From: Malacoraja senta
Lineage: Eukaryota
NCBI GenBank assembly: GCA_038087875.1
Contig: JAXLNO010004261.1
Coordinates: 1-64,000, forward strand
Reading direction: 5' to 3'
DNA: 64,000 bases
Every line of letters begins with the position of its first letter. Position 1 is the stretch's first letter. Below the pieces are notes generated by a model that did no database searches, was not told the DNA's origin, and saw nothing but the letters and a program-made list of their open reading frames with translations. The position numbers and the translations under genes were made by a program. Shown here piece after piece: positions 11,295 through 50,917 of the stretch.

Positions 11295-11335
11295 TTAGCA
11301 GTGCACGTTCTGCTTTGGTTGAATATTTTGATAAT
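11295..11335 (-). CDS. Candidate terminal cytoplasmic exon (DYQNIQPKQNVHC*)
   Basis: Strong acceptor tctaatatttaatttccctcctcag|AT. Phase 1 is compatible with the TM exon; the frame gives a YxxI motif then TAA, with AATAAA about 52 nt downstream. Requires a 13.1-kb intron and has no transcript support. Confidence 0.5.
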
Positions 11336-11469
11336 CTGAGGAGGGAAATTAAATATTAGACAACAAAGAAATGGCATAGCAGAGAACAGAACTCAGAAAG
11401 ATGCAACTAGTTTATTCGCTTTAACTGTTGATTCATCCCACATAACATCTTCCTACCAGATATAAAGGC

Positions 11470-11715
11470 ACAGCGCCAGACACCTGGGTTTGATCCTGAC
11501 CACGGGTGATGTCTGTACGGAATTTGTACCTTCTCCCTGTGACTGCATAGGTTTTCTCCAGGTGCTCCAGTTTCCTCCCACATTCCAAAGACAGATGTGC
11601 AGGTTTGTAGGTTAATTGACTTGTGTTCCTAGCTTATGTGGGTGATCATTGGTTGGTGCGGACTCAGTGGGCCAAAGTGTCTGTTTCAATGCTCTCTCTC
11701 TGAACTAAACAAAAA
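11470..11715 (+). mobile_element. V-SINE (HE1-like)
   Basis: gggtttgatcctgac...ggtttcctcccaca...gtgggccaaag...ctaaac tail. Confidence 0.85.
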
Positions 11716-11759
11716 ACTCAATACTCCTTCAAATAGTTTCGTTCACACAAGTTCTATGT

Positions 11760-11965
11760 TATCTAACTTTCGCTTCCACACTAGGGTCAAATTACAGAGA
11801 CCAATTAACCCATAAACCTGGCATCTTTAGTATGTGTGTGAAAACTGGAGGACAGTGGAAACCCATGCGGTCATAGGGAATACATGCAAACTTCACACAG
11901 CCGACAACCGAGGTTATGATTGAACTGACGTCTATGACGCACTGAGGCAGCAGCTCTATCAGCAG
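11760..11965 (-). mobile_element. V-SINE (HE1-like)
   Basis: Reverse-complement match to the SINE head and central domain. Confidence 0.75.
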
Positions 11966-12699
11966 CACCACTCTGCCTCAGGTTGTGTCATGTTCAGCAC
12001 AAACGTTGTTGGACAAAGGACCTGTTCCTCTATTACAGGGGCATTCCCATTCATCGTAAAATTCAGCGAACTCAGCACCATTGGGTCACTGGAAATATTC
12101 CCTGCCTGACCATCAGATCCCTCCAGATGAGTCGGACAGACACCAGTTAGGCAGCATCTGCCTGCAAATGATTCATGTCCCTCAAACCCCTGCATCTCCA
12201 TGCACCCACGAAGGTGCACGCCAGACGCCACCATCCCTGGCAGTGCTTTCCAGGCACACACTGTCCTTCCTGTATATATTGTCCTTCGTACGATATTGTC
12301 TGTATTATTTATTATTTATTGTGGTGTATGTGGTGGATGTATTGTACTGAATTGTATTTGTCTGAGAGCGAACCAAGACACATTCCTATCAACTTGTTGA
12401 CATGGCAATAAACTTCTTGAACTTGAACTTGAACACACCACATAGTATGTAATAAAAACTTGCCCTTTTAAAAAACTGCAGCTTCTACCCTGCACTGAAT
12501 ATAATGCAATAAGTTAAATGCCATAGTAGGCATTTAGTTAATTGGGATAATTTTAGTTAATTGGGAGGTGTGATTGCAAATCTTGTACAATATCATAAAC
12601 CAAGTAAAATGTGACAAAGTCAAAATGGCCAGGCACAAAGAACAGAATAATCATGAACATCAATAACATGTCAATAACTAGACTCTCCTAGTGGCAGCA

Positions 12700-15600
12700 T
12701 GCTGTAAGGTTGCAAACTCGTTTGCTCCCTTAACTTTTAACTTCCACTGACCACTCTTTCAATGTTACTGGTGACTATTTGACTTCAAGACACCGTCTAA
12801 CTGTTCATAAAGTGTTGATAACACTTTTACACGCCTTAATCGTGAAAAGGATGGAGACAAGAAGGAAAGGAGGATCCCCAAAGAAGGAACTGGGGAAAAG
12901 CCATAACCACAGCTGCAGCTTCTGATTCCAGCATCATAGAAGCAATATCGAAAATGAACGATGAATTGAAAAATGAGCTGAAAAATGAAATGAAAACAAG
13001 ATTTGGCAGTTTGGAAGAAATGGTGAAAGGAGTTTCGACCAAATTAGAAACATAGAAACATAGAAAATAGGTGCAGGAGTAGGCTATTCGGCCCTTCGAG
13101 CCTGCACCGCCATTCAATATGATCATGGCTGATCATCCAACTCAGTATCCTGTACCTGCCTTCTCTCCATACCGCCTGATCCCTTTAGCCACAAGGGCCA
13201 CATCTAACTCCCTCTTAAATATAGCCAATGAACTGGCCTCAACTACCTTCTGTGGCAGAGAGTTCCAGAGATTCACCACTCTCTGTGTGAAAAAAAAATT
13301 CTCATCTCGGTCCTAAAGGATTTCCCCTTAATACTTAAACTGTGACCCCTTGTCCTGGACTTCCCCAACATTGGGAACAATCTTCCTGCATCTAGCCTGT
13401 CCAACCCCTTAAGAATTTTGTACGTTTCTATAAGATCCCCCCTCAATCTTCTAAATTCTAGCGAGTACAAACCGAGTCTATCCAGTCTTTCTTCATATGA
13501 AAGTCCTGACATCCCAGGAATCAGTCTGGTGAACCTTCTCTGTACTCCCTCTATGGCAAGAATGTATTTCCTCAGATTAGGAGACCAAAACTGTACGCAA
13601 TACTCCAGGTGTGGTCTCACCAAGACCCGGTACAACTGCAGTAGAACCTCCCTGCTCCTATACTCAAATCCTTTTGCTATGAATGCTAACATACCATTCG
13701 CCTTCTTCACTGCCTGCTGCACCTGTATGCCTACTTTTAATGACTGGTGTACCATGACACCCAGGTCTCGTTGCATCTCCCCTTTTCCTAATCAGCCACC
13801 ATTCTGATAATAGTCTACTTTCCTGTTTTTGCCGCCAAAGTGGACAACCTCACATTTATTCACATTATACTGCATCTGCCATGCATTTTCCCACTCAACC
13901 AGCCTATCCAAGTCACCTTGCAGCCTCCGAGCATCCTCCTCACAGCTAACACTGCCCCCCAGCGATGTGTCATCCGCAAACTTGGAGATGTTGCATTCAA
14001 TTCCCTCGTCCAAATCATTAATATATATCGTAAATAGCTGGGGTCCCAGCACTGAGCCATAGCGGTACCCCACTAGTCACTGCCTGCCATTGTGTAAAGG
14101 ACCCGTTTACTCCTACGCTTTGCTTCCTGTCTGCCAGCCAGTTCTCTATCCACATCAATACTGAACCCCCAATACCGTGTGCTTTAAGTTTGTATACTAA
14201 TCTCTTATGTGGGACCTTGTCGAAAGCCTTCTGAAAGTCCAGATATAACACATCAACTCGTTCTCCCTTATCCACTCTACTAGTTACATCATCGAAAAAT
14301 TCTATAAGATTCGTCAGACATGATTTACCTTTCATAAATCCATGCTGACTTTGTCCAATGATTTCACCACTTTCCAAATGTGCTGCTATCCCATCTTTAA
14401 TAACTGATTCTAGCAGTTTCCCCACTACCGACGTTAGACTAACTGGTCTGTAATTCCCCGTTTTCTCTCTCCCTCCCTTTTTAAAAAGTGGGGTTACATT
14501 AGCTACCCTCCAATCCTCAGGAACTACTCCAGAATCTAAAGAGTTTTGAAAAATTATCACTAATGCATCCACTATTTCTGGGGCTACTTCCTTAAGTAAT
14601 CTGGGATGCAGCCTATCTGGCCCTGGGGATTTATCGGCCTTTAATCCATTCAATTTACCTAACACCACTTCCCGGCTAACCTGGATTTCACTCAGTTCCT
14701 CCATCTCATTTGACCCCCGGTCCCCTGCTATTTCCGGCAGATTATTTATGTCTTCCTTATTGAAGACAGAACCAAAGTTGTTATTCAATTGGTCTGCCAT
14801 GTCCTTGTTCCCCATGATCAATTCACCTGTTTCTGACTGCAAGGGACCTACATTTGTTTTAACTAATCTTTTTCTCTTCACATATCTATAAAAGCTTTTG
14901 CAGTCACTTTTTATGTTCCCTGCCAGTTTTCTTTCATAATCTATTTTCGCTTTCCTAATTAAGCCCTTTGTCCTCCTCTGCCGGACTCTGAATTTCTCCC
15001 AGTCCTCTGGTAGGCTGCTTTTTCTGGCTAATTTGTACGCTTCATCTTTTGTTTTGATACTATCCCTGATTTCCCTTGTTATCCACGGATGCACTACCTT
15101 CCCTGATTTATTTTTTTGCCAAACTGGGATGAACAATTGTTGTAGTTCATCCATGCAGTCTTTAAATGCCTTCCATTGCATATCTACCGTCAACCCATTA
15201 ATAATCAATTGCCAGTCTATCTTGGCCAATTCACTTCTCATACCCTCAAAGTTACCTTTCTTTAAGTTCAGGACCTTTGTTTCTGAATTAACAATGTCAC
15301 TCTCCATCCTAATGAAGAACTCAACCATATTATGGTCACTCTTGCCCAAGGGGCCACGCACAACAAGACTGCTAATTATCCCTTCCTCATTACTCAATAC
15401 CCAATCTAGAATAGCCTGCTCTCTCGTTGGTTCCTCTACATGTTGTAGAAAACTATCCCGCATACATTCCAAGAAATCCTCTTCCTCAGCACCCCTGCCA
15501 ATTTGATTCACCCAATCTATATGTAGATTGAAGTCACCCATTATAACTGTTTTACCTTTGTTGCACGCATTTCTAATTTCCTGTTTGATGCCATCCCCAA

Positions 15601-21083: not shown

Positions 21084-21084
21084 G

Positions 21085-22355: not shown

Positions 22356-22359
22356 AATC

Positions 22360-23300: not shown

Positions 23301-23462
23301 TTAAGGTCTCTGACTCAGTGCTGCCCTGTTTCACATTGTAGTCCACCTGTCATGTTGTTGCTCATTCATTCGACTTTCCACTTTGAACCATTTCTCCCAC
23401 TACTCACATTCCCACTTAATTTTGAGTCATAGAAACATAGTCTTCCAGCAACAGCGGCCTTG

Positions 23463-23849: not shown

Positions 23850-24150
23850 GCACAGTGTCACAACTGGTAGAGCTGCTGCCTCACTGCGACACAGACCCGG
23901 GTTCAATTTTGACCTTGAGTGCCATCTATGTGGAGTTTGCACGTTCTCCGTGTAACCGCATTGGATCCCTCCAGGGGCTCCGGTTTCCTCACACATCCTA
24001 AGATGTGTCAGTTTATAGTTTAATTGGCCACTGTAAATTGCCCCTAGTGGGTGGGTGACTGGATGAGAAGGTGCAATGAGATAGAATTCATGAGAACAGG
24101 TGGTTGGTGGTTGGCATGGACACGGTGGGCCGAAAGGACTGCTTCCATGC
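23850..24150 (+). mobile_element. V-SINE (HE1-like)
   Basis: Same motifs, more diverged. Confidence 0.8.
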
Positions 24151-24411
24151 TGTACTTTTTAATGACTCAATGATATCTCTAGGATTTGGTGCAGTGAATC
24201 CATAATGTTTAACTTTTTTTTTTACACTGAATTCACAATTTTCAAATATCTGATCATCAGAAACATTTAACAACAGCACAAAGGCTAGTTGACAGTGGTG
24301 ACTGTCAAAGCATTTGAAGTGTAGCTGCTGCCTTATCCTACTTGAGATCGATCATTTCTTCAAGCCCAATACCTTTACTAGCAACAGTTCATCACAATTT
24401 TTCCATCTTAC

Positions 24412-24519
24412 CTCTCCTCTTTTTTCTCCACCAAACAATTACTGCCAAGACAATAGCCAGCAATATCAGCACACACACGGCAATAAGGCCTATGTGCCTG
24501 TCTTTCTTCCCATTTCCTT
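24412..24519 (-). CDS. MHC class I-like connecting peptide/transmembrane exon (EGNGKKDRHIGLIAVCVLILLAIVLAVIVWWRKKRR)
   Basis: Not in the ORF track; read by hand. Acceptor cttatttttcag|AA and donor AGA G|gtaaga; 108 nt, in frame with alpha3. About 22 hydrophobic residues followed by a basic stop-transfer motif. Confidence 0.88.
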
Positions 24520-26279
24520 CTGAAAAATAAGAATGCATAATTTTACATATCATTTGTTAAGCTGTGCAGCTAAATAGATTGGCACTCTCTGAAGACTTCA
24601 GGGTGAAGAAGGGTCTCGACCCGAAATGCCTCCTATTTCTTTTCTCAAGAGATGCTACCTGACCACTGAGTTACTCCAGCATTTTGTGTCTATCTTTGGC
24701 ACTTTTCAACATATATAAATATGTTGTTTTGAATCATGGAGATCTGCAACATGGCAAAGGGACAATATCTGTTCTGTACAACTCTATGATCTATGGCACC
24801 ATCACAGCCACAACTTAATTCATGAAAGAAGGTGAATTGAAAGCAGAAAGCTTTAACCCTATATAAACTATCATCTGTTTTGGGGAAAATTTTGGATTCC
24901 TTTCAGTAATGGCAGAACATTTAAGTAATAACAAAACAATAAAGTGCATTAACAGGAAAATTGTAGAATGAAAGAGATGCAGATACTGATTTATACAAAA
25001 GCTTTAGTTTAGTTTATTGTCACGAGTACTGAGGTGCAGTGAAAAGCTTTTGTTTCATGCTAACCAGTCAGTGGAAAGAATATACATGATAGACACAAAA
25101 TGCTGGAGTAACTGAGCGGAATAGGCAACATCTCTGGCGAACATGGACTCAGTCAGAAGGATCGTGACCCGAAACATCACCTATTCCTTTTCTCCAGAAA
25201 TGCTGCCTGACCAGCTGAGTTATTCCAGCAATTTGTGTCCATCTTCAGTGTAAACCAGCATTTGCAATTTCTCCCTACACATGGACAGGTGACATTTCGT
25301 TTACGGACCCTTCTTCAAACTTTGTTTGAGAAATTGATTAGAATTCTTTGAAATGCAACAGGAACCCGTAGACAATGTATATTTGAGCAGCAGTAGTTTG
25401 CAGGTGTGCACAGCCTAAAATTCAAAAACAAAATGATGGAAAAGCAGAATAGGTAACAAAATTGGAATGAGAAACAAAAGAAATACAATATATTGTAGAG
25501 ATCCAAGCTTCGTGAACAAATCAATGTTTTTTTAAAGAAATACAGTTTTGGCACACTCGTGTTTAGTAAGGACTTGAGCAAAGTTCCTGCCGTTGTTATC
25601 GGGCACACCAGTTGACTGGCGATTAACTCATCACCAACTCCCACCAAAACCCTGTCACATGATAGTCCCAGCTCCCCTGATGAGGGTTCTAGCAATAAGT
25701 GGCCTGACCACCAGATGTCGCCACAATATCTGGATTTTCATAAGATATCTGATCAAGTGATGCAAAGGCACATGGCTTATGACATTGGGGGTAATAATTA
25801 GCATGAATGGAAAAACAATTAAGAGCAAGCAGAGAGTTGTCTTAAAGGAGTGTTCAGGTTGGGAAACTGCAACTGCAGGATGGGAATCAATGCAAGAAAG
25901 TGAACTACTTATCGTTAGTATTAAGAGCAGATGAAGGGACTGGTGGCGCTGTAGCCTAGATTGCTGATGATACATAGATAGGTTGAAAATTATGTTCTGG
26001 AGTATGTCAACAGTCTTCAGAGTGAAATATCAGATTCCTTAGTTGTGCATTGTTCGAGGGAATCTTCAAAAGTGAGCATTTGTGTAGGTTAGTGCAGCAT
26101 ACCTCGAATCAAACTACGATCGCTGTTTGTCAGGCAGTTGTTTTTCGTTGCAGAAGCTGTGACTTGCTTCAGGGAACTTACTTCATTAGGTTTAGTTTTA
26201 TTAATGTCAGATGTTTCAAGATACAGTGCAAAGGTTTGTTTTGTATGCTATCCAAACAAATTAGATAATACTATAGATA

Positions 26280-26900
26280 AATAAAAAACTCAAAAACAAT
26301 AGATAGAGCAAAGAGGAGGATACAGAGTACAGAATATAGTTCTCAGCATTGTAACACATCAGTTCCATCGACAATGTTCAATGTTCAATGAGGTTGAGGT
26401 GAATCGGGCATTAAACCTACATTATGGAAGGACCCTTCCGAAGCCTGTTAACAGGTGGAAAGGGGGTGTTCCTGAGTCTGGCAGTGCTTATTTTCAACTT
26501 TCAGTACCTATTGCCTGATGGGAGCAGGAAGGAGGAATGTGAGAAAGGTGTGATAAGTCTCGTTTTCCAAGGCAACCTGGTGTAGATTGGGTCAATAGTG
26601 GGAAGTCTGGGCTGTGTGATGATCTTTAACTCTTTGTATATTCTTGCAGTCTTGGGCAGTGCAGTTCCCAAATCAAGATGTGATGCAACCCAACAAAATG
26701 CTTTCTCTAGCAGCATCTATAGATGTTTGCTGGAGTCACCAGAGACATGATGAATATTCTCAGTCTCCTGAGGAAGTAGAGGTGTTGGTGTGCCTCCTTG
26801 GCTATGTGGCCAGTCCATGACAGAATATTGGATAAATTCATGCCAAGGAACACGAAGCTCTCAATCATTTCCACTTCAGACTATTGATTCAGATTGGGGC
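26280..26900 (-). mobile_element. Rex1/Babar-type LINE 3' fragment, degraded
   Basis: Reverse complement resembles the LLPSG.RY and QRLY.LR.LR segments of the other Rex1 copies. Confidence 0.7.
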
Positions 26901-27178
26901 ATGTACTCCCCCAGTGCCTTGCTGTTCATCACATCATGAGGAAAGATTCATTTTTTATTTAAACATACCTTTCATGGATATCAGTTCCACCACTGAGAAT
27001 CCCAAATACTCCTTCCTTGTATATTAGTTATTTATTTACTTACTTTTAATAAATTTTCTGTTGACAAAGTCTTCTGCTCATGTGGAGAGTGGGTGCTGAT
27101 TACGTGATTACTTAGAGCAACACCACTAAACAAAGAAAGTTTAAGCATCTTGGAATATGGGATGTACTACATGGGATG

Positions 27179-28222
27179 TAGCAATGTCACAAAATTTTGA
27201 GATTTTAAAAATCAAGTCTGCAATTTATCCCATCAGATAAAGCATAAAAAGAAGTTTAATTTGACACCTAATTCACTTTCATATCTTCTGTATTAAAAAA
27301 GTTTGGCAATTTTCATACTCGGAAATTAGCATCTTGTTCCCTATTGCTTTTCCATTGACTTAACACAAAAGCTGTGATCAAGGACAGTCAAAAGCCCATA
27401 ACTTTCTTAAAAATTAAGAGAACTTAATGAAATTTTCAGTTATTATAGATTGAAGCATTCTGAAACAAATATGAAACAATCTTACTTGGATGACCTGAAA
27501 TTAAAGCATATAATTAGTTAGTTACCTAATTGTAGCTAATTACAAAATTCAATTACTAGATCTAAATATCTATCCATTTCTTAAGAAAAAGTTAACATTT
27601 TTAAAAAGCCTAAGTGTCCAAATAACATTCACACAAGAATTCACAATAAAACATTATTTTTAAATCTCATTGTCATTAATTTATAGGCCAAATGGAAGGA
27701 ATTTAGTGTTTAATTCCTGTAAATTAATGGCCATTTAAATCATCTTGCAAGTGGGTTTTTGTGGAACGCGCTGGTTTGGAATGTTGCGGTTGCACTGAAT
27801 TAAACCCCAATATCGGCAGAAAAAATACAGCCGGTTGGTATATTTAAACAATCACATTTTCGCAACTTGAAATTTTTATTAAAGGCATCCTAAGAAGCAA
27901 GTTTATATGAAAAAATAAATGGTGTACCTTGCCTTGTCCCGTGCGTGGAATCCGTCCCCGTTGTCGGCGTTTACGGCATTTGAAGATGATTTTAATTTTA
28001 CTCCAACAATTAAATTATAAAGCGCTAATATTAATAAACTTAATAAAACGGCAGTCGAAGCGATTTTTCTTCATCAACTATTTAGCCTGTTCAAGATCAT
28101 TTAGAACAGGCTGCCGAAATATCGCATTTTAAACCCGCCCCCCTCTCAAAGGCGCCAAAGTTGCGCACACGGGCAGTGACAGAACTGCAGCGCCGCTGAA
28201 GGTAAGTTTTGTAACATACCTA
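27179..28222. mobile_element. Non-autonomous 1,044-bp DNA transposon with TIRs (copy 1)
   Basis: Termini TAGCAATGTCACAAAA...TTTTGTAACATACCTA; near-identical inverted copy at 59096-60140; no ORF. Confidence 0.85.
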
Positions 28223-28297
28223 GATGTAGTCACAATGATTAAAATGGAAACAACAGAAGATAATGATTATCTATGAAAGAATATTTAACGTTCTTAC

Positions 28298-28564
28298 CCC
28301 AGATGATGGTCTTCCCACCGGGCAGGCTGCTGTGATCGACATGACAGGAATACTGTTTCCCATCATACGGATCATACTCAAGGACAGACCTTAGATGATA
28401 TGTTCCATCGTTGTTGGGTATGACCCCAGAAGATTTGGTCTCAGAGACATGTTGACCATTCTGCAACCAGCTGACTTTGATGGCCGGTGGGTAAAATCCA
28501 AACACAGTGCAGTACAGGACTGAATGATCATCAGGGCGGGCAGCGAGAGTGACCTCAGGGGAAA
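28298..28564 (-). CDS. MHC class I-like heavy chain, alpha3 Ig-C1 exon (VSPEV...LYCTVFGFYPPAIKVSW...PNNDGTY...YSCHVDHSSL...IIW)
   Basis: C1-set motifs C-x3-GFYP, W, PNxDGTY and YSCHVxHSSL. Acceptor tcttgtag|TT and donor TGG G|gtaaga; 267 nt, phase 1/1. Confidence 0.95.
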
Positions 28565-29824
28565 CTACAAGACAGTAAGATGGTTATTTTCACCTTCAGT
28601 AAAACGGGCAGTCACCCATCACAAAATATTCTTCAGTCTACTACAACCACCAAGTTACTGTCCGCATCTGGCCCATTTTGCCTCTTTCGTCACCATCAAC
28701 CAAACACGTGGTTTAAAAGGGATCGTACCCTCCCTGTTAAGACAGTACACAAGAAAGTTTGGAAGTACGTACCATTAAATTCAGGAACAGCTTCTTCCCT
28801 GCTGTTATTGGACTACTGAATGATTCTCATGTAAGATAAGATGTTGCCCTGATCTTCCAACCAATCTCATTGTGATCCTTGCTACTCTTTTTGATCTGCA
28901 CTTTCTCTGTAACTGTAATGCTATGATATTGTAAACCGATATTATGCACTCTGAATATTTTACTCTTTGCACTGATCTACTTGTGGATGGCTTGATTGCA
29001 CATATGTAGTATGATATGATTGGATAACACACAGACAAACTTTTGACTATATCTCAGTTCACGTGACAATAATAAACTAATACCAACAGCAAATCTTTTC
29101 ACTAGGGCACATTATTGACAATAATAAATAATTGACAAGTTACGAAATGAGGGCCAATTGGGGAGGGGACAAGCTTAAAATTGGCAGTATTTTCACTCCT
29201 CTTCAATAAGAGATAAAAGAGACCAGTCATTTGTTTACAAAATCTCTTTTTGCAGAGTGTGGTCATTCTCTGGCGCCAGAGATTTGTGAAGACAAAATCA
29301 TTGGAAGCATTTAATATGGCGGTAGTTAAACTTTTGAAAGATTGGAGAATTGAGTGCAATGAGGAACTGGCACCGAACAGGAGTTGATGCCTGAGGAACG
29401 TCAGCCATGGTCATATTGAATGGTGGGCAGGTTGGAGGACCAAATGGCTTACTTGATAACTGAGGAGAAAATCAGGCTTCTGAATGATCGTTCCATAAGC
29501 TAGGGTACTGTCCAATTGACCACTACCCCATTACAGACAGTGGACTTTGTTTATGGAACTATGCAGGAAGGAACTGTAGATGCTGGTATAAACCGCAGAT
29601 AGACACAAAATGCTAGAGTAACTCAACGGGTCAGGCAGCATCTCTGGAGAGAAGGAATGTGTCATGTTTTGTGTCGAAACCCTTATCTAATGGAACTGGT
29701 GTGCTACATTGCTGAGAACTATATGCCACACTCTGTACCTTCCCCTTTGCTCTACCTACAGTACTTGAGTTGACTTGATCATATATATGTATGTTGTTAT
29801 CTCATCCAATTGGATAGCATGCAA

Positions 29825-35357: not shown

Positions 35358-35633
35358 CTTTTCTGGTCAGGTATGTCTTTCCAATTGCATAGTATGTAAG
35401 CCATAGATCCACACAGTCATGTTCTAACAAGCTCTTGAAATAACGGTTCATTTTTTCATTCTTGTCCCATTTCTCTTTGAAGGGCTCAGCTATTGGATCA
35501 TGCACCGTCCACTTTAGTTTGTCCTTATCAAAACTAAATGCATATCTTCCATCAAAAGCCAACTTCAATATCCCTACAGTGGGACTGTGATCGTCCACCT
35601 CACAACCAAACTGTCCTTGAACGTAGTGATAAT
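35358..35633 (-). CDS. MHC class I-like heavy chain, alpha2 exon (YHYVQGQFGCEV...AFDG...KEKW...LEHDCVDLWLTYY...LTRK)
   Basis: Canonical alpha2 Cys pair and H-x-x-Q, A-F-D-G and K-W motifs. Acceptor atttcag|AT and donor AAA G|gtgagt; 276 nt, phase 1/1. Confidence 0.95.
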
Positions 35634-35799: not shown

Positions 35800-36250
35800 G
35801 TACAACTGTAGAGACCATATTATTGTACGGGTGTGAGGCATGGACTCTCACTCCAGCACTGTCCTAGACTCTCGATGGTACCTACACCCGAATGCTCGGA
35901 AAAGTTCAAAATGTCAGATGGAGGGACCACATCACCAACGCCCAGCTCTATGGGGAGAATCCACCTCTGACCGAGAAGATCACGTTGAGAAGGATGAGGC
36001 TCGCAGGTCTCTGGCTCCGCCACCCAGAAATGCCAGCAAACAAGGTTGTGCTGTGGGAACCCACCCATGGAAGACTTGACCCAGGATGGCCAATCAAGAC
36101 GATGGTGAAGACGTTGATGGAAGACGCATGTGTAGAGATAAACGAGGCGCCTGCCAGCTGCATGGAGGACAGAGATGTGTGGTGCGTCCGTCACCGTGCC
36201 CATCGGAAACCAGCACGGCACTAATGTTTTCAACGCTTATTATTATCATC
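35800..36250 (+). mobile_element. RTE-clade LINE 3' fragment
   Basis: ETILLYGCEAWTL...RML...W.DHITN..LY...RRMRLAG..LRH; (tat) tail. Confidence 0.85.
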
Positions 36251-36359
36251 CACTACACCCCTCTGTCCTGGGGATTTATCCACATTTCTCTTCAAGTGAT
36301 CCAACATCTCCTTCTTGCTTAACTTCAAAGTGTCCCTGCATGTTAGCATTCTCCACATT

Positions 36360-37235
36360 GATTCTCCATGTGTAAGAAAGAACTGCAGATGCTGCAGATG
36401 TTAAAATCGAAGAGAGACACAAAATGCTGGCGTAACTCAGCGGGTCAGGCAGCTTCCCTGGAGAGCTGGAATGGGCATTGTTTTGGGTCGAGACCCTTCT
36501 TCAGACTGATGTCAGGGGAGGGACAAAGATAGAATGTCGGCGGAGACAGTAATACTGGTGGCAGAATTGGGAAGGGGGAGGGGATGGAGAGAGAAATCAA
36601 GGGCTATCGAAAGTATTAGAAGTCAATGCTCATACCGCTGGAATATAGACTATCCAAGCGAAATATGAGGTGCTGTTCCTCCAATTTGGGCTGGGCCTCA
36701 CTCTGACAATGGAGGAGGCCCAGGACAGAAAGGTCAGATTGGGAATGGGAGGGGGAGTTGAAGTGCTGAGCCACCGGGAGATCGGGTAGGGTAAGACGGA
36801 CTGAGCGGAAGTGTTCAGCAAAACGATCGCCGCGCCTGCGCTTGGTCTCACATGATGTAGAGAAGTTGACAACTGAAACAGCGGATACAGTAGATGAGGT
36901 TGGAAGAGGTGCAAGTGAACTTCTGCCTCACCTGGAAAGACTTTAGGTCCTTGGACGGAGTCGAGGGGGGACGTAAAGGGACAGGTGTTGCATCTCCTGC
37001 GGTTGCAGGGGAAAGTATCCGGGGAGCGGGTGGTTTGGGTGTGAAGGGACGAGTTGACCAGGGAGTTTCGGAGGGAAAGGTCTCTGCGGAAAGCAGAAAG
37101 GGGTGGAGATGGGAAGATGTGACCAGTAGAGGGATCCAGTTGGAGGTGGCAGAAATGTTGGAGGATTTTATGATGTACTTACTATTAATGGTCCTTACTA
37201 TTCTACATGTCTTCCTTGGTGAAACCAAACCTCGC
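36360..37235 (-). mobile_element. Penelope-like element 3' part (GIY-YIG region plus tail)
   Basis: FQVRQKFTCTSSNLIYCIRC and EQHLIFRL..L...GM.IDF remnants; hammerhead-like tail. Confidence 0.85.
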
Positions 37236-37289
37236 CTATATCCACAAACTCCAAGCACATATTCCCTTCTATATCCTTAAGCAATCCAC

Positions 37290-37650
37290 CTTTTGCTGCA
37301 ATGGTTGCCTCGCCAACGGTATGTCTGTCCCTTCCTTCTTTGTGTCCGTTTTGTACGTGTTAAATGTATATTCTTTAGTGTTCTTAAGCTTGTTTTTTGG
37401 GCGGGGGGGTGTTGGGGGAGTTGTGGGTAACTTTTCCTAATCTCTTACCTCGACGTTGATGCGATATTTTCTGTATCGTATCTCCGTCCACAATGCGGCC
37501 TAACATTGAGGAATGGCGGCCTTTGCTAGAGATCGACCGGGAGATCCATCGCAGGAGCCTGTGAACTTACCATCATGGAGCTCGCAATCCTTGTCAGGGA
37601 TCGACTTTAGGGCTCCAACTGTGAGAGCCTGCAAGACTTTAACATCGCGG
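37290..37650 (+). mobile_element. GC-rich non-autonomous element (head related to 33200 and 38862 elements), truncated
   Basis: T-tract, G-tract, then ggcctaac...ggcggcct core. Confidence 0.5.
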
Positions 37651-37654
37651 CCAA

Positions 37655-40060
<2,406 letters not shown>

Positions 40061-40559
40061 AATGCTTGTGAAGCCCAACTTGGGAAATGCCTCACGATAC
40101 ATGCGCATCTTGGAAGACATGGTTCACAACACACACTGTTTGTGCGTGTATACGCAGGGCCTCAGAGGAATTTTATCAGTGGGTACAAAGTATCTATTGG
40201 GCCCCCTTCCCTTCTCCAATAGTCATCCTGTTTTTATCCACTATGCTACAGTTTTATGCCATGAGCTGTAGCCTGCACGGCAAAAAGGGGTATGGAAGTT
40301 GAGAGAGGGGTGGAATGGGGCGCTCTGTTCATTTTCTGCATTTGAGGCCTTATGCCCCTATACTCCCGCCATGATAAATATAAATAAGTATAAATAAAAT
40401 AAAAGGATCAGAAAGCACATTTGTTTTCCTTCACTCTATAGATGCTGCCTCACCCGTTGAGTTTCTCCAGCATTTTATCTACCTTTGTTTTGAACATCTT
40501 TGTTTATACTACAATACAGATAAGGAGAAAGAATTCACATTGAAACATCCTTTAATATT

Positions 40560-40940
40560 TAACCGCAGAACTGCTGGCCTGTGGCCTATAACATCCTGAA
40601 GCTGCGGTCTCCAGTAGGAAAGTGCCGAGTCGGGACCTCCAAGCCGCACAGAGTGTGTTTGTCCGTCCCAACATCAGTTTGGATCATCCCATCGAGAGGG
40701 CCTTGTACATCGGGCCGTCCCTAGTTGCGACTGCGGAGGGGTTATGGCCCCGAACACGGGTGAACAAAGGAGGAGGACTGGCTGAAACGTGTTGCCTTCC
40801 ACCACAGTGAAAAATGCTGTAGTGGATGTTTGTGTTCAATTTTATTGTGTATTGTGTGTTCTTTTTACGTGTATCACTGCTGGCAAATTCACTGCACTGC
40901 ACCTTCGGGTGTATGTGATGAATAAAACTGACTTTGAATA
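40560..40940 (+). mobile_element. Related GC-rich element fragment with a Rex1-type tail
   Basis: ggcctgtggcctataacatc core; aaattcactgca...gtgatgaataaaac tail. Confidence 0.5.
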
Positions 40941-41569
40941 CTTAGCCTGGCCAAATCCACAAGACGTTCATGAGACATTGTCGACCTTAAATAATTCTTA
41001 ATCAGCTTGAGTTTGCTAAATGACCTCTGCAGAAGCTACTGTTGCTGGAATTGTTAATGGTATTCTGAAGCCAACACAAACATTTGGAAACAGGTTACCA
41101 AGTCAATAGTCTATTAACAAGTTCAACAGATCTAATGGTTTTAACTTCATTTATAGAATTCACCCTCCCACTAACACACACATACACTCAGACACACACT
41201 CACTCACCTACTCACATACACCCACACACACCCACACACATCCACACACACACACACACCCTCACTCACACCCACCCATCCACATACTGATCCAAACCCA
41301 GGTCCGGACCACTGAAACAGCCGCAGCTGTCGACTCTCACCACCTCCTCGGGCAGGGCCACCGCAGCCACTGTCGCCGACCTTCACTGTCTTCAGAAAGC
41401 CACCGATGCTGCTGCCCATATCTCTACTCCAGCTCCCCACCAGCAACTCTGCCGACCCTCGCCTCTCCAGCGGCCACCAGCGGGCCAGAGCCGTCACCTC
41501 ACCAGAGTTCCCGGCATAGCACCAGGCCCACAACCTAAACCATGCAGACAGCACATGGTCTGATTGCTG

Positions 41570-42370
41570 GCTCCTAGTGCTCCCCCCTCCTACATGGAAG
41601 ACCCTTCAGTAGTGATGACTCTGCTGGGTTCTAGTGCTCTCCCCCTCCTCCAACAAGGAAGATCCATCAGTAGTGATGACTCTGTGGGGTCCTCATGCTC
41701 TCCCCCTCCTTCTCCTACAGGGAAGACCCATCAGTAGTGATGACTCTGTTGGGTCCTCATGCTCTCCCCCTCCTCCTCCTGCAGGGAAGACCCATCAGTA
41801 GTGATGACTCTGTTGGGTCCTAATGCTACAACCCCCCCCCCCCCTCTTGCAGGGAAGATCCATCAGTGGTGATGACTCTGCTGGGTTCTAGTGCTCCCCC
41901 CTCCTACAGGGAAGACCCATCAGTAGTGATGACTCTGTTGGGTCCTAATGCTGCACCCCCCCCTCCTACAGGGAAGACCCATCAGTAGTGATGACTCTGT
42001 GGGGTCCTCATGCTCTCCCCCTCCTTCTACTGCAGGGAAGACCCATCAGTAGTGATGACTCTGTTGGGTCCTAATGCTACAACCCCCCCCCCCTCTTGCA
42101 GGGAAGATCCATCAGTAGTGATGACTCTGCTGGGTTCTAGTGCTCCCCCCTCCTACAGGGAAGACCCATCAGTAGTGATGACTCTGTTGGGTCCTAATGC
42201 TGCACCCCCCCTCCTCCTACAGGGAAGACCCATCAGTAGTGATGACTCTGTGGGGTCCTCATGTTCTCCCTCCTCCTACAGGGAAGATCCATCAGTAGTG
42301 ATGACTGTTGGGTCCTAATGCTGCACCCCCCCCCCCCTCCTGCAGGGAAGATCCATCAGTCGTGATGGGT
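41570..42370. repeat. Minisatellite of about 13 x ~60-bp units with higher-order ABCD-ABCD structure
   Basis: Core ccatcagtagtgatgactctg...gggt...atgct(c)n tcctacagggaaga repeated; the core occurs 13 times. Confidence 0.92.
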
Positions 42371-42699
42371 CTTCCCCTTCCCCCTCTTTTAATCAGGTTA
42401 CCCCGACCACACACTCGCCAGTTAAAATTCCCTGCTTTATTATGGATCACAATTTCTACGAATTACGATATATAAAACTCTGTCGGCTCACACAAAATGT
42501 GAATGCTAGTCTTCACAAAATATATGCAAACATTTTCTGAGATTTCAGGAAATTCCCGTCCCCCCTCCTTCAGCTCCCGGGTACGATGTACCCCCTGCAC
42601 CCCCTCTCATAGGCCCTGTTTATACGTACGCGCATTCGTGAACAAAATACTGTGTGTGGTCTGTACCTTTGTTAGGTTCCTAAAAATAGGCTCAACAAA

Positions 42700-42770
42700 T
42701 TGATGTTCTTTTCAACCCATTCATGACCCCCCAGAAAAACCACAAACGACCCCCAGGTTAAGAACCACTG
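42700..42770 (-). mobile_element. hAT/Buster-type terminus, possibly the 5' end of the fossil transposon
   Basis: Minus strand begins CAGTGGTTCTTAACCTGGGGGTCG, typical of Charlie/Buster ends. No partner TIR found. Confidence 0.55.
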
Positions 42771-42774
42771 CTTT

Positions 42775-42970
42775 GGAGATACAGTGCTGAAACAGGCCCT
42801 TCAGCCCACACTAGGGACAATTTACATTTACACCAAGCCAATTTACCTACATCTCAGAGAAAAGCCACACAGGTTACGGGGAGAATATGCAAACTCCGTA
42901 CAGTCACCACTCGTAGTCGGGTTCAAACCCGGGTCTCTGGTGCTGCAAGGCAGCAACTCGTGTAAGGCCA
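42775..42970 (-). mobile_element. V-SINE (HE1-like), partial
   Basis: gagatacag...aaacaggcccttcagccca...aaactccgtacag. Confidence 0.8.
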
Positions 42971-43324
42971 CGATCTCTTGGCTTTGCTTATAGTTATTAT
43001 CATGTTTTATCTTCTATTGTGTTCTTTTTGCTTTTGCATATAAACAAATGTAAAGCTGCACATAAGGTTGGATCTTTTCGAGGCCCAAGCTGCCCCATCT
43101 TTACCACAAAAGTGCTTCCTATATTTAGAGAAACATAGATATAATAAGGCTCACCCCTCATGGGCATTGAAGGCTTTCTCTAAAATATGGAGACCATTAA
43201 GCTGTTCACTGCCAAGTTTATTTTTCACTATTGGCCATGACCCCTAGTGTACTCGGCGGTGGCATTGAACAGGTTAAAGATATCCAGTGATGTGTAGCTG
43301 CGCTACCTTTCCTATGTATTTTTA

Positions 43325-44006
43325 AGGGCCTGTCCCACTTACGTGTCCTTGGTACACAAATTATGCGACCTTGTGGTCGCGTTGAGGCGCACGGGCATCG
43401 TATGGCCGCGCGGGGCCGGTCCCACTTGGAAGCGCGGAGGGGTATGGAGTTGTGCGCGACATCGCGCGGGGCTCCAATAATTTTGTAGTGAACGAAATCT
43501 TCGCGCGCCAACGGCCTGTCGCGGAACTGACGGCCAAAGTGGGACAGGCCCAAGACCCTGGCGCGACACAAAGTCTCACTTTCAACAGGAGCAGAAGCAG
43601 GCAAACGATCGCCGAACTCGGCCTGGGGCTCACAGCCGTTGCGGTCCAGATCCGCCCCCTCTTCTACTCCCAGAGCGGGGCCAAGAAAATTGAAGATAGA
43701 CACAAAATGCAGGAGTAACTCAGCGGGACCGGCAGCATCTCTGGAGAGAAGCAATGGGTGATGTTTCGGGTCAAGACCCTTCTTTTCAGACTGAAGAAGA
43801 GTCTCGACACGAAACATCACCCATTGCTTCTCTCCAGAGATGCTGCCGGTCCCGCTGAGTTACTCCAGCTTCGTGTCCATCTTCAAATAACGTCACGCGC
43901 TCCAGACGGCTGTGCGTACGCATGTAATCGCGCCCGACCTTCGCCGGACCATCGTGGCTCAACGCGTAATTTGCGTTCCAAGGACACGTAAGTGGGACAG
44001 GCCCCT
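43325..44006. mobile_element. PIF/Harbinger-type MITE containing an inverted pair of Penelope tails
   Basis: TIRs agggcctgtcccacttacgtgtccttgg / ccaaggacacgtaagtgggacaggcccct with TTA on both flanks. Confidence 0.8.
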
Positions 44007-44514
44007 TTACTTAGATGATTCATTCCCTCTGGCATTGATTGATGAATCAAAGTGGGGGGGGGGGGGGGGAGGTTGATGGAATTTGTAAGGATTTGCTGAA
44101 GTCAGTTTGCTTAAAACTGCTCACTCCTTGAAAAGGAGAGTCTGTGAACTTAAGCCCAGAGACAAAGAACAGTTTGTGAACTCAAGGTTATAATTGATAA
44201 AAACCTAGGCACAACTGTGAACAACAACTCTTTATTAGGATGAAGGTAATGAGCTAATGCCAACCATGCCCCTGGGACCAGGAGTAATAAGGAGGGGTCA
44301 AAACTTGGATGATGTTTTCTTTCCAATAAGAAACTCTACAAACAATGATAGCTGAATAAAAAATAATGATGTTGTATAGATGAAGAGCCTTCTTTTCAAG
44401 CTGCTTCCTGCAGTCTTTTAGTTGTTCTGCAGATCCTTTACATTCTCTCGTCTTCGTGTTTTCAAGAAACACCACAAATAGCTAATTTGTATACTAATTA
44501 GCTAATTATATACT

Positions 44515-45215: not shown

Positions 45216-45217
45216 TA

Positions 45218-47200
45218 TAGAAACATAGGCACAGGAGTAGGCCATTCGGCCATTCGAGCCAGCACCGCCATTCAATATGATCATGCCGGCATCTAGAATC
45301 AGTACCCCATTCCTGCTTTTAGAAACATAGAAACACAGAAAATAGGTGCAGGAGTAGGCCATTCGTCCCTTCGAGCCTGCACCGCCATTCAATATGATCA
45401 TGGCTGATCATCCAACTCAGTATCCTGTACCTGCCTTCTCTCCATACCCCCTGATCCCTTTAGCCACAAGGGCCACATCTAACTCCCTCTTAAATATAGC
45501 CAATGAATGGGCCTCAACTACATTCTGTGGCAGAGAATTCCAGAGATTCACCACTCTCTGTGTAAAAAATGTTTTTCTCATCTCAGTCCAAAAAGATTTC
45601 CCCTTTATCCTTAAACTGTGACCCCTTGTTCTGGACTTCCCCAACATCGGGAACAATCTTTCTGCATCTAGCCTGTCCAACCCCTTAAGAATTTTCTAAG
45701 TTTCTATAAGATCCCCCCTCAATCTTCTAAATTCTAGCGAGTACAAGCAGAGTCTATCCAGTCTTTCTTCATATGAAAGTCCTGACATCCCAGGAATCAG
45801 TCTGGTGAACCTTCTCTGTACTCCCTCTATGGCAAGAATGTCCTTCCTCAGAGTAGGAGACCAAAACTGTACGCAATACTCCAGGTGTGGTCTCACCAAG
45901 ACCCTGTACAACTGCAGTAGAACCTCCCTGCTCCTATACTCAAATCCTTTTGCTATGAATGCTAACATACCATTCGCTTTCTTCACTGCCTGCTGCACCT
46001 GCATGCCTACTTTCAATGACTGGTGTACCATGGCACCCAGGTCTCGTTGCATCTCCCCTTTCCTAATCGGCCACCATTCAGGTAATAGTCTACTTTCCTG
46101 TTTTTGCCACCAAAGTGGATAACCTCACATGTATCCACATTATACTGCATCTGCCATGCATTTGCCCACTCACCCAGCCTATCCAAGTCACCTTGCAGCC
46201 TCCTAGCACCCTCCTCACAGCTAACACTGCCCCCCAGCTTCGTGTCATCCGCAAACTTGGAGATGTTGCATTCAATTCCCTCGTCCAAATCATTAATATA
46301 TATTGTAAATAGCTGGTGTCCCAGCACTGAGCCTTGCGGTACCCCACTAGTCACTGCCTGCCATTCTGAAAAGGACCCGTTTACTCCTACTCTTTGCTTC
46401 CTGTCTGCCAGCCAGTTCTCTATCCACATCAATACTGAACCCCCAATACCATGTGCTTTAAGTTTGTATATTAATCTCTTATGTGGGACCTTGTCGAAAG
46501 CCTTCTGAAAGTCCAGATATAACACATCCGCTGGTTCTCCCTTATCCACTCTGCTAATTACATCCTCGAAAAATTCTATAAGATTCGTCAGACATGATTT
46601 ACCTTTCATAAATCCATGCTGACTTTGTCCAATGATTTCACCATTTTCCAAATGTACTGCTATCCCATCTTTAATAACTGACTAGCAGTTTCCCCACTAC
46701 TGATGTTAGACTAACTGGTCTGTAATTCCCCGTTTTCTCTCTCCCTCCCTTTTTAAAAAGTGGGGTTACATTTGCTACCCTCCAATACTCAGGAACTACT
46801 CCAAAATCTAAAGAGTTTTGAAAAATTATCACTAATGGATCCACTATTTCTGGGGCTACTTCCTTAAGTACTCTGGGATGCAGCCTATCTGGCCCTGGGG
46901 ATTTATCGGCCTTTAATCCATTCAATTTACTGAACACCACTTCCTGGCTAACCTGGATTTCACTCAGATCCTCCAACTCATTTGACCCACGGTCCCCTGC
47001 TATTTCCGGCAGATTAATTAAGTCTTCCTAAGTGAAGACAGAACCAAAGTAGTTATTCAATTGGTCTGCCATGTCCTTGTACCCCATGATCAATTCACCT
47101 GTTTCTGACGGCAAGGGACCTACATTTGTTTTAACTAATCTTTTCCTCCATATCCCTTGATTCCTTTAGCCTTAAGAGCTAAATCTAACTCTCTCTTGAA
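45218..47200 (-). mobile_element. Young 5'-truncated CR1 (45320-47150) with extra CR1 tail pieces on both sides
   Basis: RT ORFs of 212 and 118 aa, visibly almost identical to the 13045-15610 copy. Confidence 0.95.
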
Positions 47201-47749
47201 AGTACGTTGTTTAGATAAGAGCCTTCTTTTCAAGCTTCTTTCTGCGGTCTTTTAGTTGTGCTTTGCAGGTGCTTTAGTTTGTCTCGTCTTCTCTCTGCTG
47301 AATATGTAACAACTACAAGCTGTGAATAACAACAAAACCTTGAAAACTAACACTGTACTGCGAGTGCGAGTACAAAGCATGTTCTAACGTGACCCAACTT
47401 CAGTCTGAAGTAGGATCCTCACCCGAAATATCTGCCTTCCCATGTTCCCCAAAGATGCCGCTTGACCCGTTGAGTTCCTTAGCACTTTGTGTGCGGAGGA
47501 AAGCAGCCTCTGCTCTTCCTTTCATCTACAATTGTTAAATAGTTCAATCCAGACAATTAGTTCAATTTTACACTGTTGACTAAAATGAGAAAGAAGGCAA
47601 TTCAAGGATAAATAACTGCCCATAATTCCATGTGACAGAGAAAGAGGCCTTTCAGCCTCCTGAGCCCACTCTAGCCCAGAGAACAAAATTATTCCAACAC
47701 TAATTTTCCCCAAAACGGATCTTTCTCAATTCTATCAATGCCACAAATC

Positions 47750-47995
47750 CACCTATTTGCAGTGGTGGCTTAATCTACTAATTCAGCACATTTTGGTATG
47801 TGGGTGGAAACTGGAGAACAAACATTGTCACAGGGAGAATGCTTATACTCCACACAGACTGCACTGGAGATGATTGAACCCGGATCACTGGAGCTATGAG
47901 GCAGCAGCGCTCTTTGCTATAAAGCAGTCATAGAGTCACACAGCAGGGAAACAAGCCCTTTGGCCCAACTTGTCCATGCTAATCAAGATACCCCA
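47750..47995 (-). mobile_element. V-SINE/CR1-tail fragment
   Basis: gtgggtggaaactggag...gaggcagcagc. Confidence 0.65.
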
Positions 47996-48044
47996 TTTAA
48001 GCTAGTCCCATTTACCCTGCAATGGGTAGACATCATTCAAAACG

Positions 48045-48530
48045 TTTCTCTCTAGATGTCAACTGCTCTACATTAGTGAGACCAAGCGCAGGCTTGGCGA
48101 TCGTTTCGCCGAACGCCTCCCCTCGGTTCGCAACAACCAACCTGATCTCCCGGTGGATCAACACTTCAACTCCCCCCTCCCATTCCAAATCCGACCTTTC
48201 TGCCCTCGGTCTCCTCCATGGCCAGAGTGAGGACCACCGTAAATTGGAGGAGCAGCACCTCATATTTCGCTTGGGCAGTTTACACCCCAGCGGTATGAAC
48301 ATTAACTTCTCTAATTTCAGGTAGTCCCTACTTTCTCCTCCCCTTCTCAGCTCTCCCTCAGCCCACTGGCTCCACCTCTTCCTTTCTTCTTCCTGCGCCC
48401 CCCCCCCCCCACTCCCCCCCACCCTCACATCAGTCTGAAGAAGGGTTTTCGGCCCGAAACGTTGCCTATTTCCTTCGCTCCATAGATGCTGCCTCACCCG
48501 CTGAGTTTCTCCAGCACTTTTATCTACCTA
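48045..48530 (+). mobile_element. Penelope-like element 3' part
   Basis: ETKRRLGDRFAE...LEEQHLIFRLGSLHPSGMNINFSNFR. Confidence 0.9.
48431..48466 (+). ncRNA. Minimal type-I hammerhead-ribozyme-like motif in the Penelope tail
   Basis: CUGAAGA-(A)-GGG[uuuucgg]CCC-GAAAC-GUU; palindromic AACGUU helix III. Helix I is weak. Confidence 0.5.
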
Positions 48531-48559
48531 TGCATGTCCCTGTCCATGTGTCTATTAAA

Positions 48560-48860
48560 TATTGTTATTGTACCTGCCGCAACTCCATTCTCTGGCAGGT
48601 CATTCCATATGCTGACCACTCTCTGAGCACAAAGATTGTCCCAAGTTCCAATTAAATCTTTCCCCTCTCACATTCAACCCATGTCCTCTGGTTATTTTAT
48701 TCTCCTTCTCTGGGTAAAAGGCTCTGGGCATACACTCTATCAATTCCCCTCATGATTTTAAGCACCCCTATATGATCACCCCTCAGCCTCCTGTGCTCCA
48801 TGGAATAAAGCCCTGGCTTGCCCAATCTCTCCCTCTTGTTCACACCCTTGAGCCCCAACA
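48560..48860 (-). mobile_element. CR1-clade 3' fragment
   Basis: RERLGKPGLYSMEHRRLRGD.I.V.KIMRGIDRV. Confidence 0.85.
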
Positions 48861-49554
48861 ATATGCTCATAAATGTCATAAACACAACAATGTTGCAGAT
48901 AATAAGTGCACCATAAATAATGCAAATAAAAAAAATATTTTTGAAGGCAATCTGATTCAATAAACATGGTTCAATGAATCAGATGATAATGTAATAAACG
49001 TCATTCACATGTATTCATATATAATTTGAAAATAATAATAAATATTGCAAGATGTGGAAAATTGATAGAAATTATGCCCAGTGCATAATATTTGGATGTA
49101 TTGTTCCCTGTTTGTACCCTCACCCTGTTTTAGTCCAGTTAAAGATCAATAATATAATTTGTTTAATGTGTAACCGAAGAGGTAACAAAAAGCAATGTTT
49201 TCAGCAATAATTAATCATGAATGAATGATACTTTATTGTGACATGTGACAAGTCACAGTGAAAGTCTTTGTTTTGTAAACCCAACGTATGTCAAGATTCT
49301 TCACATAAAGGGCACCGACAAAGTTATAAAGTCTCCCACACCAGGTCCTCCTTTGTCCCCCACCTCACGATGGTCCCCTCATGCCTAGTCCTGCTTTGTT
49401 CAATGGTACACTACGAATGTCATTGAATTTACACAGTAATGGTGATAGGGCTTATTGATTTACAATATAAAACGTGTCCAAATGCAAATTATATGGATGT
49501 GCAAGTGTGGTGCAGAAGGATTTGGACAGCTTACTTTACAATTGGTGCCCAAGA

Positions 49555-49775
49555 TAATTTAGAGATATAGCACGAAAACAGCCCTTCGAGTCCACAGTGA
49601 CCAGTGATCCCCTTTGGCATACAGGCTTGGAGTGTGGGAGGAAACCGGAGCATCCGGGGAAAGCCCACGCAGGTCACGGGGAGTACGTACAAACTATGTA
49701 CAGACAGCACCTGAGGCCAGGATCAACCCTGGGTCTCTGGCACTACGGCAGCATCACTACGGCTGAACCACAATG
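49555..49775 (-). mobile_element. V-SINE (HE1-like)
   Basis: gagtgtgggaggaaaccggag...aaactatgtacagacagcacc. Confidence 0.8.
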
Positions 49776-50399
49776 CCATTTAGGTTATCCTTTAAATATT
49801 TCACACTACTTTTCTTTCAACATTTGTGAATAAAAGTAAAAACAATTGGTGAGGTACGCAAGGGATTTTAACCATTCAAAAAGCCACCAACATTTCAATG
49901 ATTTGTAAAATGCTGGAACACACAGCAAGTTCAACAGAACCTATGGAAAGAGAAACAAAATTAATGCTTCAGAATTGTGAGAATGTGTAAGTTACAGACA
50001 GGAGTGGGAGGCATGGTTGGACATAGCGGGTATCACTAATAAGGTAATGACAGGTTTCCATGGTGATAAACTGACAATGAAGCCATCAGACAATGGCATT
50101 TTTGGTTTTTATTTCACATTTGCAGCATCTGCAGTTCTTAGGTTAGTGACTCAGCATGGAAACGGGCCATTCGGCCCACCAATTCCAAGCCAACCATCGA
50201 TCATCTTTCACACTAGTTCTATGTTATCCCAAAATGGACACAAAATGCTGGAGTAAGTCAGGGGAAACACTCTGTCTGAGGAAGGGTCTTGACCTGAAAA
50301 GTCATCCATTCCTTGTATCCAGAGATGCTGCCTGTCCCGCTGAGTTACTCCAGCACATTGTGCCTATCTTTGCTGTAAACCAGCATCTTCAGTTCCTTC

Positions 50400-50580
50400 C
50401 TACACATCTATGTAATCCCACTTTCTCACCCATTCTCAGCACACAAGAGTAATTTACAGAGCCCAATTAACCTACAAACTCTCACGTTTTCAAGATATGG
50501 GACGAAACCGGAGCACCTGGAGGAAATATGTGTGTTCACAGGGAGAACGTGTAGTCAGGATCAAACCTGGGTCTCTGGCA
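50400..50580 (-). mobile_element. V-SINE (HE1-like), partial
   Basis: caattaacctacaaac...gaaaccggagcacctggagg. Confidence 0.75.
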
Positions 50581-50656
50581 CAGCGAGAAATTTCTTTGAG
50601 ATGTTTTTTTATGAACATTGATCACACTCCAAATGTATAGAAATGAATGAACTAAC

Positions 50657-50917
50657 TTGCTGTTTCGTTCTGCCTCCGCATCCATTCATCGACTTGCCCT
50701 TTGATGATTCCATGGAAACCAGTTTCAGAGACCGTATTTGTTACCCAGTAATTCCTGTCAAATGCAGCCGCCATCCATTTCTGTCTTGGAACTGTAATGA
50801 CCATGTTTTTGTCATAATACTGTATCTCACAACCATCCAGTTCACCCACGACACTATATTCTGGTAGATGAGTACTCCCGTGGTTCAGGGTGTAGTAATA
50901 GATCAGTGTGTGAGGCC
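50657..50917 (-). CDS. MHC class I-like heavy chain, alpha1 exon (GPHTLIYYYTLNHG...DRNYW...MRRQNETA)
   Basis: Translation matches class I alpha1 motifs (HTL-Y, VVG-LDG, PR--W, YW, N86 sequon NET). Acceptor tgtctag|GG and donor GCA A|gttagt; 261 nt, phase 1/1. Confidence 0.93.

Follow-up and report, generated by a model that had tools for sequence, protein, structure and literature searches.

Which lineage of class I molecules is encoded by a large, transposon-filled locus of a skate, and what kind of ligand would its product display? The locus lies in a stretch of 64,000 nucleotides from Malacoraja senta (assembly GCA_038087875.1, contig JAXLNO010004261.1, positions 1 to 64,000 of the forward strand; the whole stretch is called the window hereafter), in which a major histocompatibility complex (MHC) class I heavy-chain gene is read from the minus strand. 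Sequence comparison assigns the gene to UGA, an ancient lineage of non-classical class I molecules found in sharks and rays, and makes it the orthologue from a skate (Rajiformes), because the structure deposited as shark UGA (PDB 9CH4) is its best match in all domains and because it falls into a clade supported at 100/100 with the zebra-shark orthologue of that molecule. We hold it to be very likely, taking all parts of this reading jointly, that the gene is a skate UGA orthologue encoding a working non-classical heavy chain, probably with CD1-like lipid display via endosomes.

The assignment to UGA starts from an exon-wise sequence search of the PDB, in which 9CH4 (chain A) is the best match for alpha1 (E-value 6.4e-37), for alpha2 (6.8e-35) and for alpha3 (5.3e-34), with ungapped identity of about 65-70% in each ectodomain. 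The entry is entitled 'Crystal structure of shark nonclassical MHC CLASS I, UGA' and was released on 2026-03-18. The runner-up chains for alpha1 and alpha2, which are those of MR1 and of fish, bird and nurse-shark class I, lie at 1e-9 to 1e-12, and all matches of alpha3 other than 9CH4 are generic matches of C1-set Ig domains. The Stegostoma (zebra shark) protein P0159 aligns with 9CH4 from end to end (E 7e-170, about 88% identity) and is therefore its orthologue. An exhaustive HMMER search with alpha1 returned three strong representatives followed by a steep fall, and the best of these, as query of a word-based search, gave 15 close relatives at E 1e-116 or better, whose hosts are skates (Leucoraja, Rhinoraja), sawfish, manta, stingray and five shark orders; NCBI has named these proteins automatically as 'F10 alpha chain-like' or 'MR1-like'. 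With single exons and orthologue proteins as queries rather than the joined protein, no protein from the window's own genome was among the relatives matched, and the window copy seems to be absent from the protein collections. The elasmobranch UGA and UFA lineages are distinct from the salmonid U-lineage loci that are also named UFA and UGA.

In a maximum-likelihood (ML) tree of 43 class I proteins, from which the long-branch or gappy rows P0139, P0054, P0144 and P0121 were left out, the window gene and its relatives form a 15-member clade of sharks and rays (support 100/100) that includes Stegostoma P0159. Within this clade the skates (100/100, window gene included) and the batoids (100/99) track the species tree. 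The tree takes the name UGA from the zebra-shark orthologue of 9CH4, not from the depositors' own named lineage sequences. The clade of Triakis scyllium UAA alleles, in which P0070 is the representative of a 13-allele cluster, is separate from that of UGA. The nearest outgroup of the UGA clade is Leucoraja erinacea P0005 (98/91), and the second is the basking-shark protein P0092 (97/88). The latter (Cetorhinus maximus, XP_078392849.1) has a short hydrophobic end and no cytoplasmic tail, which is the layout of a glycosylphosphatidylinositol signal, and it may represent the UFA lineage.

When joined, the five exons of the window gene (Table 1) can be read through 317 codons with neither a stop nor a frameshift, and there is an AG acceptor at all five, a GT donor at exons 1-4 and phase 1 at every junction. 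An initial annotation, made from the letters of the window, had proposed four phase-1 exons in one frame plus a candidate fifth; the coordinates, splice sites and frame of the four were borne out, and the fifth is real, since the proteins of Rhinoraja, Pristis, Mobula and Hemitrygon close with the same terminal exon and the colinearity of the Rhinoraja locus with the window extends to it. This shared batoid tail exon, which lies 13.1 kb downstream of the transmembrane (TM) exon, gives the ending ...KRK-DYQTIQPNQNMRC in Rhinoraja and ...KRR-DYQNIQPKQNVHC in the window gene. It had also been pointed out that the TM and tail exons are missing from the list of open reading frames (ORFs), and the reason is their size, which is below the length for that list. 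The product is a type I membrane heavy chain consisting of alpha1, alpha2 and alpha3 domains, a TM segment and a 13-residue tail. The alpha1 exon carries Y7, Y59, R84 and the N86-E-T glycan site; C101/C164, F143, K146, W147, L159 and Y171 are encoded by the alpha2 exon. Queried alone, the alpha1 exon is too divergent for Pfam and has no match there, but class I chains of the PDB are found with it. The TM segment is the single outstanding hydrophobic peak 3' of alpha3 in a hydrophobicity scan, and its exon ends in WWRKKRR, a basic stop-transfer run.

Table 1. Exons and 3' signal of the UGA gene in the window.
Feature	Position	Strand	Description
alpha1 exon	50657..50917	minus	261 nt, phase 1 at both ends; first codon split with a leader exon outside the window
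alpha2 exon	35358..35633	minus	276 nt, phase 1; Pfam MHC_I 2.9e-13
alpha3 exon	28298..28564	minus	267 nt, phase 1; Ig C1-set domain, Pfam C1-set 3.9e-20
Connecting-peptide/TM exon	24412..24519	minus	108 nt, phase 1; located by hydrophobicity scan and orthologue tblastn (P0151/P0001)
Last coding exon (tail)	11295..11335	minus	41 nt including TAA; 13 codons, DYQNIQPKQNVHC; YQNI motif
Candidate AATAAA polyadenylation signal	11238..11243	minus	about 52 nt past the stop codon; read from the sequence

A close comparison is offered by Rhinoraja longicauda, in which colinearity with the window extends along the entire gene. Its introns are about 85% identical to those of the window gene (blastn), its exons 90-97% (93.5-97% from alpha1 to TM, 90% in the tail), and the acceptors and donors are the same; the protein of the window gene is 91% identical to Rhinoraja P0151 overall and 92% in alpha1 (tblastn). 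The ratio of nonsynonymous to synonymous substitution rates (dN/dS) against Rhinoraja is 0.37 overall (dN 0.042, dS 0.112; Nei-Gojobori method), and the gene is under purifying selection. Because the ratio is as low as 0.19 in alpha1 and 0.26 in alpha2, the ligand-binding domains are judged to be conserved, not diversified. On the strong polymorphism of groove alleles that marks classical genes, these two values, from a comparison of two skate genera, bear indirectly.

Residues of the groove were called from a MAFFT alignment that set the joined protein beside its relatives and the classical UAA of Triakis scyllium, a sequence in which all eight anchors for the peptide termini are present. The window gene keeps Y7, Y59, R84, N86, K146, W147, Y171 and the C101-C164 pair, and two of its eight anchors are replaced (T143F and Y159L), leaving six; this alignment agrees with the initial annotation in every one of these residue calls. 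Across the UGA lineage L159 is invariant and F143 nearly so, and position 84 is variable, being Q, K or E in most members and R only in skates. A family signature can be drawn from this alignment, and as such is not a published definition: F143, L159, K146, W147 and the helices GFHGIIKGQ and MNRYFKSLLE, all of which the window gene has. Classical molecules are recognised by the full set of eight anchors, from which the window gene departs at F143 and L159. The call of a non-classical gene, already made in the initial annotation, is supported because both T143 and Y159 are replaced, because the gene is placed outside the UAA clade and because alpha1 and alpha2 are under purifying selection.

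The cytoplasmic tail suggests how such a molecule might work. In RKKRR-DYQNIQ the YQNI follows basic residues and is a Y-x-x-hydrophobic sorting motif; the batoid UGA orthologues keep Y(Q/E)xI, and those of sharks end in YNAV or YNVI. Comparable YXXZ motifs are found in the tails of human CD1b (RRRSYQNIP) and pig CD1d (RRRVYQNIQ), and the motif in the CD1b, CD1c and CD1d tails binds adaptor proteins and drives endosomal recycling (PMC5002277). Verissimo et al. (2023) mention, among the genes of the class Ib cluster, a new elasmobranch lineage of CD1-like character, UFA (PMC10751288), and a 2025 review treats UGA together with UFA as CD1-like, single- or low-copy lineages of sharks and rays, for which crystal structure and mass spectrometry, cited as a personal communication, suggest lipids of the human CD1d type (PMC12562908). 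No primary paper on UGA or 9CH4 was found in the open-access literature searched.

It is proposed that the likeliest mechanism is probably CD1-like, by analogy with these systems. The heavy chain would pair with beta2-microglobulin, as expected from its family and from the solved shark UGA. Its groove, made hydrophobic at T143F and Y159L, would no longer clamp the peptide termini in the classical manner and would probably hold a lipid-like ligand instead of a conventional peptide. The YQNI tail would then engage adaptor proteins, as it does in CD1b, CD1c and CD1d, and so route the molecule from the cell surface into endosomes, where it could sample lipids and be loaded with them for subsequent display to T cells.

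Among the alternatives, it is unlikely that the ligands of the molecule are peptides or lipopeptides and not pure lipids, in the manner of chicken YF1*7.1 or of CD1c with lipopeptides. Such a ligand would be in keeping with the six retained anchors, with the presence in skates of R84, K146 and W147, all of which hold the peptide C-terminus, and with the occurrence among the fold matches of chicken YF1 structures containing acylated amino acids or peptides; however, both T143 and Y159 have been replaced in every member of the lineage, most members have Q, K or E at position 84, which is hence no conserved functional residue, and the sole functional report on the lineage is that of CD1d-type lipids (PMC12562908). 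A related reading, which we regard as quite improbable, is that skate UGA in particular has regained or kept a fuller anchor set (R84, K146, W147, Y7, Y59 and Y171) and binds a hybrid ligand, e.g. an acylated peptide. If this were true, skates would represent, within a single orthologous gene, a natural stage midway between the presentation of peptides and that of lipids.

A different objection concerns activity, namely that the window holds a dead or silent copy that has an open frame but no functional leader or promoter, its work being done by a second copy elsewhere in the genome. A leader exon was indeed not found in the window: nothing credible emerged when 50918-64000 was scanned, under BLOSUM scoring, with the signal peptides of Leucoraja and Rhinoraja, or was scanned for an ATG, a hydrophobic stretch and a G/GT boundary, and blastn of the Rhinoraja leader region against the window returned repeats only. 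In Rhinoraja, however, the leader exon lies 15 kb upstream of alpha1, and by colinearity of the two loci the leader of the window gene would be located about 0.4 kb past position 64000; its absence from the window is thus expected because the corresponding position maps beyond the window end. The RNA evidence is thin. Four runs were mapped on 24000-28900, three of genomic DNA and one of RNA (X1), all from coded organisms, those of the DNA runs being possibly different species. Depth in X1 is 10-16 in the bins of the alpha3 and TM exons, with almost none in unique intron bins, and it drops from 16 in the bin of the TM exon to 0 in the next intron bin; at least two exons (alpha3 and TM) are transcribed. 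A 226-nt contig of X1 aligns at 28369-28566 with 2 mismatches in 198 (99%) and continues, precisely at the acceptor, with 28 letters unlike the intron. The two surplus matched bases, up to 28566, are accounted for by the AG in which alpha2 ends, identical to that of the acceptor, and the contig fits a spliced alpha2-alpha3 transcript, its 28 overhanging letters being known only as non-intron. No joint of alpha3 to TM was listed in the mapped runs, in which repeats swamped the tables of joints and loose ends, and the tail exon is weakly represented, with a 0.12 share of its words in X1. At 28476, within the alpha3 exon, the window has T where all four mapped runs (organisms A, D and F) have A, which represents either a fixed difference or an allele carried by the individual that was assembled. 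Given 317 codons without a stop or frameshift, intact splice sites common to Rhinoraja, the overall dN/dS of 0.37, exons clearly better preserved than the introns, the expected position of the leader just beyond the window and an RNA contig with a splice at the acceptor of alpha3, we consider it very unlikely that the copy is dead or silent.

It had been left open in the initial annotation which lineage the gene belongs to, with the suggestion that it might be an unnamed one, and clear orthology to a described lineage was anticipated as the outcome that would remove the novelty. That outcome is what the 9CH4 matches and the 100/100 clade provide. A new, unnamed non-classical lineage of cartilaginous fish could be argued from the automatic NCBI names of the relatives, which give no lineage, from the missing Pfam match of alpha1 alone and from the lack of an open-access primary UGA paper in our search; against the 65-70% identity over three domains to a molecule deposited as UGA, and the clade shared with its zebra-shark orthologue, it is highly improbable and is refuted unless the PDB title is wrong. 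A classical UAA gene or a recent derivative such as UBA, to which the class I domain order, the N86 glycan site and the six anchors would conform, is virtually discounted, since the tree refutes it (the gene lies outside the Triakis scyllium UAA clade with supports of 99/98 and 100/100), alpha1 is only about 30-35% identical to the nurse-shark class I chain 6LUP, and alpha1 and alpha2 are under purifying rather than diversifying selection.

Several points weigh against the reading of the gene as a working, lipid-presenting skate UGA. The leader exon and start codon are outside the window, and a complete gene is thus not demonstrated. The transcriptional evidence comes from one run of a coded organism, as contigs and at low depth. 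In alpha3 the dN/dS against Rhinoraja is 0.89, a value from eight changes only. Skates have R84 and six of the eight classical anchors, and their ligand could differ from that of shark UGA. Lipid binding by the lineage rests on the personal communication in the review. An AlphaFold model of the Rhinoraja orthologue, built from a 14-row alignment, is poor (mean pLDDT 63.6, with a weak alpha1) and allows no inference on the groove. Linkage to the MHC, finally, is not visible at the scale of a 64-kb window. The 10-kb flanks of the Rhinoraja, Pristis and Stegostoma UGA genes contain no informative neighbour.

The gene spans about 40 kb, and its introns of 4-15 kb are rich in transposons, containing long interspersed nuclear element (LINE) reverse-transcriptase fragments and further repeat ORFs. 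No second class I copy was found in the window by tblastn with two orthologues; besides the one UGA copy there are transposon ORFs and no further host gene. Within the alpha1-alpha2 intron, a GC-richer island extends over 36000-44000 (about 0.50 against about 0.40), and adjacent minus-strand ORFs at 37662-40049, which have no Pfam match, may be pieces of a transposase-derived gene. At the other end of the window, positions 1-2200 show a strong C skew (GC skew -0.59), and their ORFs are rich in Ser/Pro/Leu when read from the plus strand and in Gly/Glu/Arg when read from the minus strand; this stretch looks like a low-complexity repeat rather than a gene. The window's sole run of N, of 155 bases, is at 6954-7108.

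The lineage, its structure and its likeness to CD1 are already on record, and the gene adds no new principle; what is new is a well-delimited skate member of UGA with exact exon coordinates. UGA is of wider interest as one of two lineages of cartilaginous fish that have been put forward as evidence for an origin of CD1-like lipid presentation as early as that of the jawed vertebrates. Genes of this kind escape notice, consisting as they do of five short exons 4-15 kb apart among LINEs, and gene models can miss the YQNI tail on its separate 41-nt exon 13 kb away, of which Leucoraja P0001 is an example. In that model (Leucoraja erinacea, isoform X5) about 70 unrelated residues follow the TM segment in place of the YxxI tail, and in another from the same species (P0156, isoform X4) the UGA alpha1 and alpha2 exons are fused to a seven-transmembrane receptor domain (PF00001). 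Both models have the look of annotation artefacts caused by the very large introns, and the fusion gives a hint that a G protein-coupled receptor gene adjoins UGA in this species.

Compared with known systems, the window gene stands closest to the other skate and ray orthologues (Rhinoraja P0151, Leucoraja erinacea P0001, Pristis, Mobula and Hemitrygon), with which it shares exon structure, phases and splice sites. UGA genes are giant throughout, measuring 36.5 kb in Pristis pectinata, 41 kb in Stegostoma tigrinum and 31 kb in Rhinoraja longicauda for products of about 334 aa. Pristis and Pristiophorus have three UGA copies each, whereas the window has one; the three copies of Pristis pectinata are on one 19.9-Mb scaffold. 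With shark UGA (9CH4) the skate gene has in common F143, L159, the GFHGIIKGQ helix of alpha1, the MNRYFK(S/N)LLE helix of alpha2 and an odd cysteine in LDGCEI. It differs in having R84 and Y7 where the zebra-shark orthologue of 9CH4 has K84 and F7, and in the longer batoid tail (DYQNIQPKQNVHC), shark UGA orthologues stopping right after YNAV or YNVI. The sister of the UGA clade, Leucoraja erinacea P0005 (XP_055486430.1, named 'MR1-like'), shares L159, FHGI(I/V)KG and MN(R/K)YFK.LLE with the lineage, but is only 44% identical to the window gene in alpha1, lacks N86, has L143 and R146, and ends in a long, different cytoplasmic tail. The classical UAA molecules (Triakis scyllium; nurse shark 6LUP) have the same domain order, disulfides, N86 glycan site and six of the eight anchors, and are set apart by T143F and Y159L in the window gene, by their separate clade and by the purifying selection on its alpha1 and alpha2. 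MR1 is among the better non-UGA matches in the PDB for alpha2 (E about 5e-12) and weak for alpha1 (E 0.02-0.1), a resemblance that, at the level of sequence, is ordinary class I similarity. The likeness of skate UGA to CD1 would be that of a non-polymorphic class I-like molecule with basic residues followed by YQNI in its tail, from a lineage reported to bind lipids, and not one of specific sequence kinship: CD1 chains match in the PDB search through the alpha3 Ig domain only, and the CD1-type Pfam model MHC_I_3 scores 16.6 bits, below its 35-bit cut-off.

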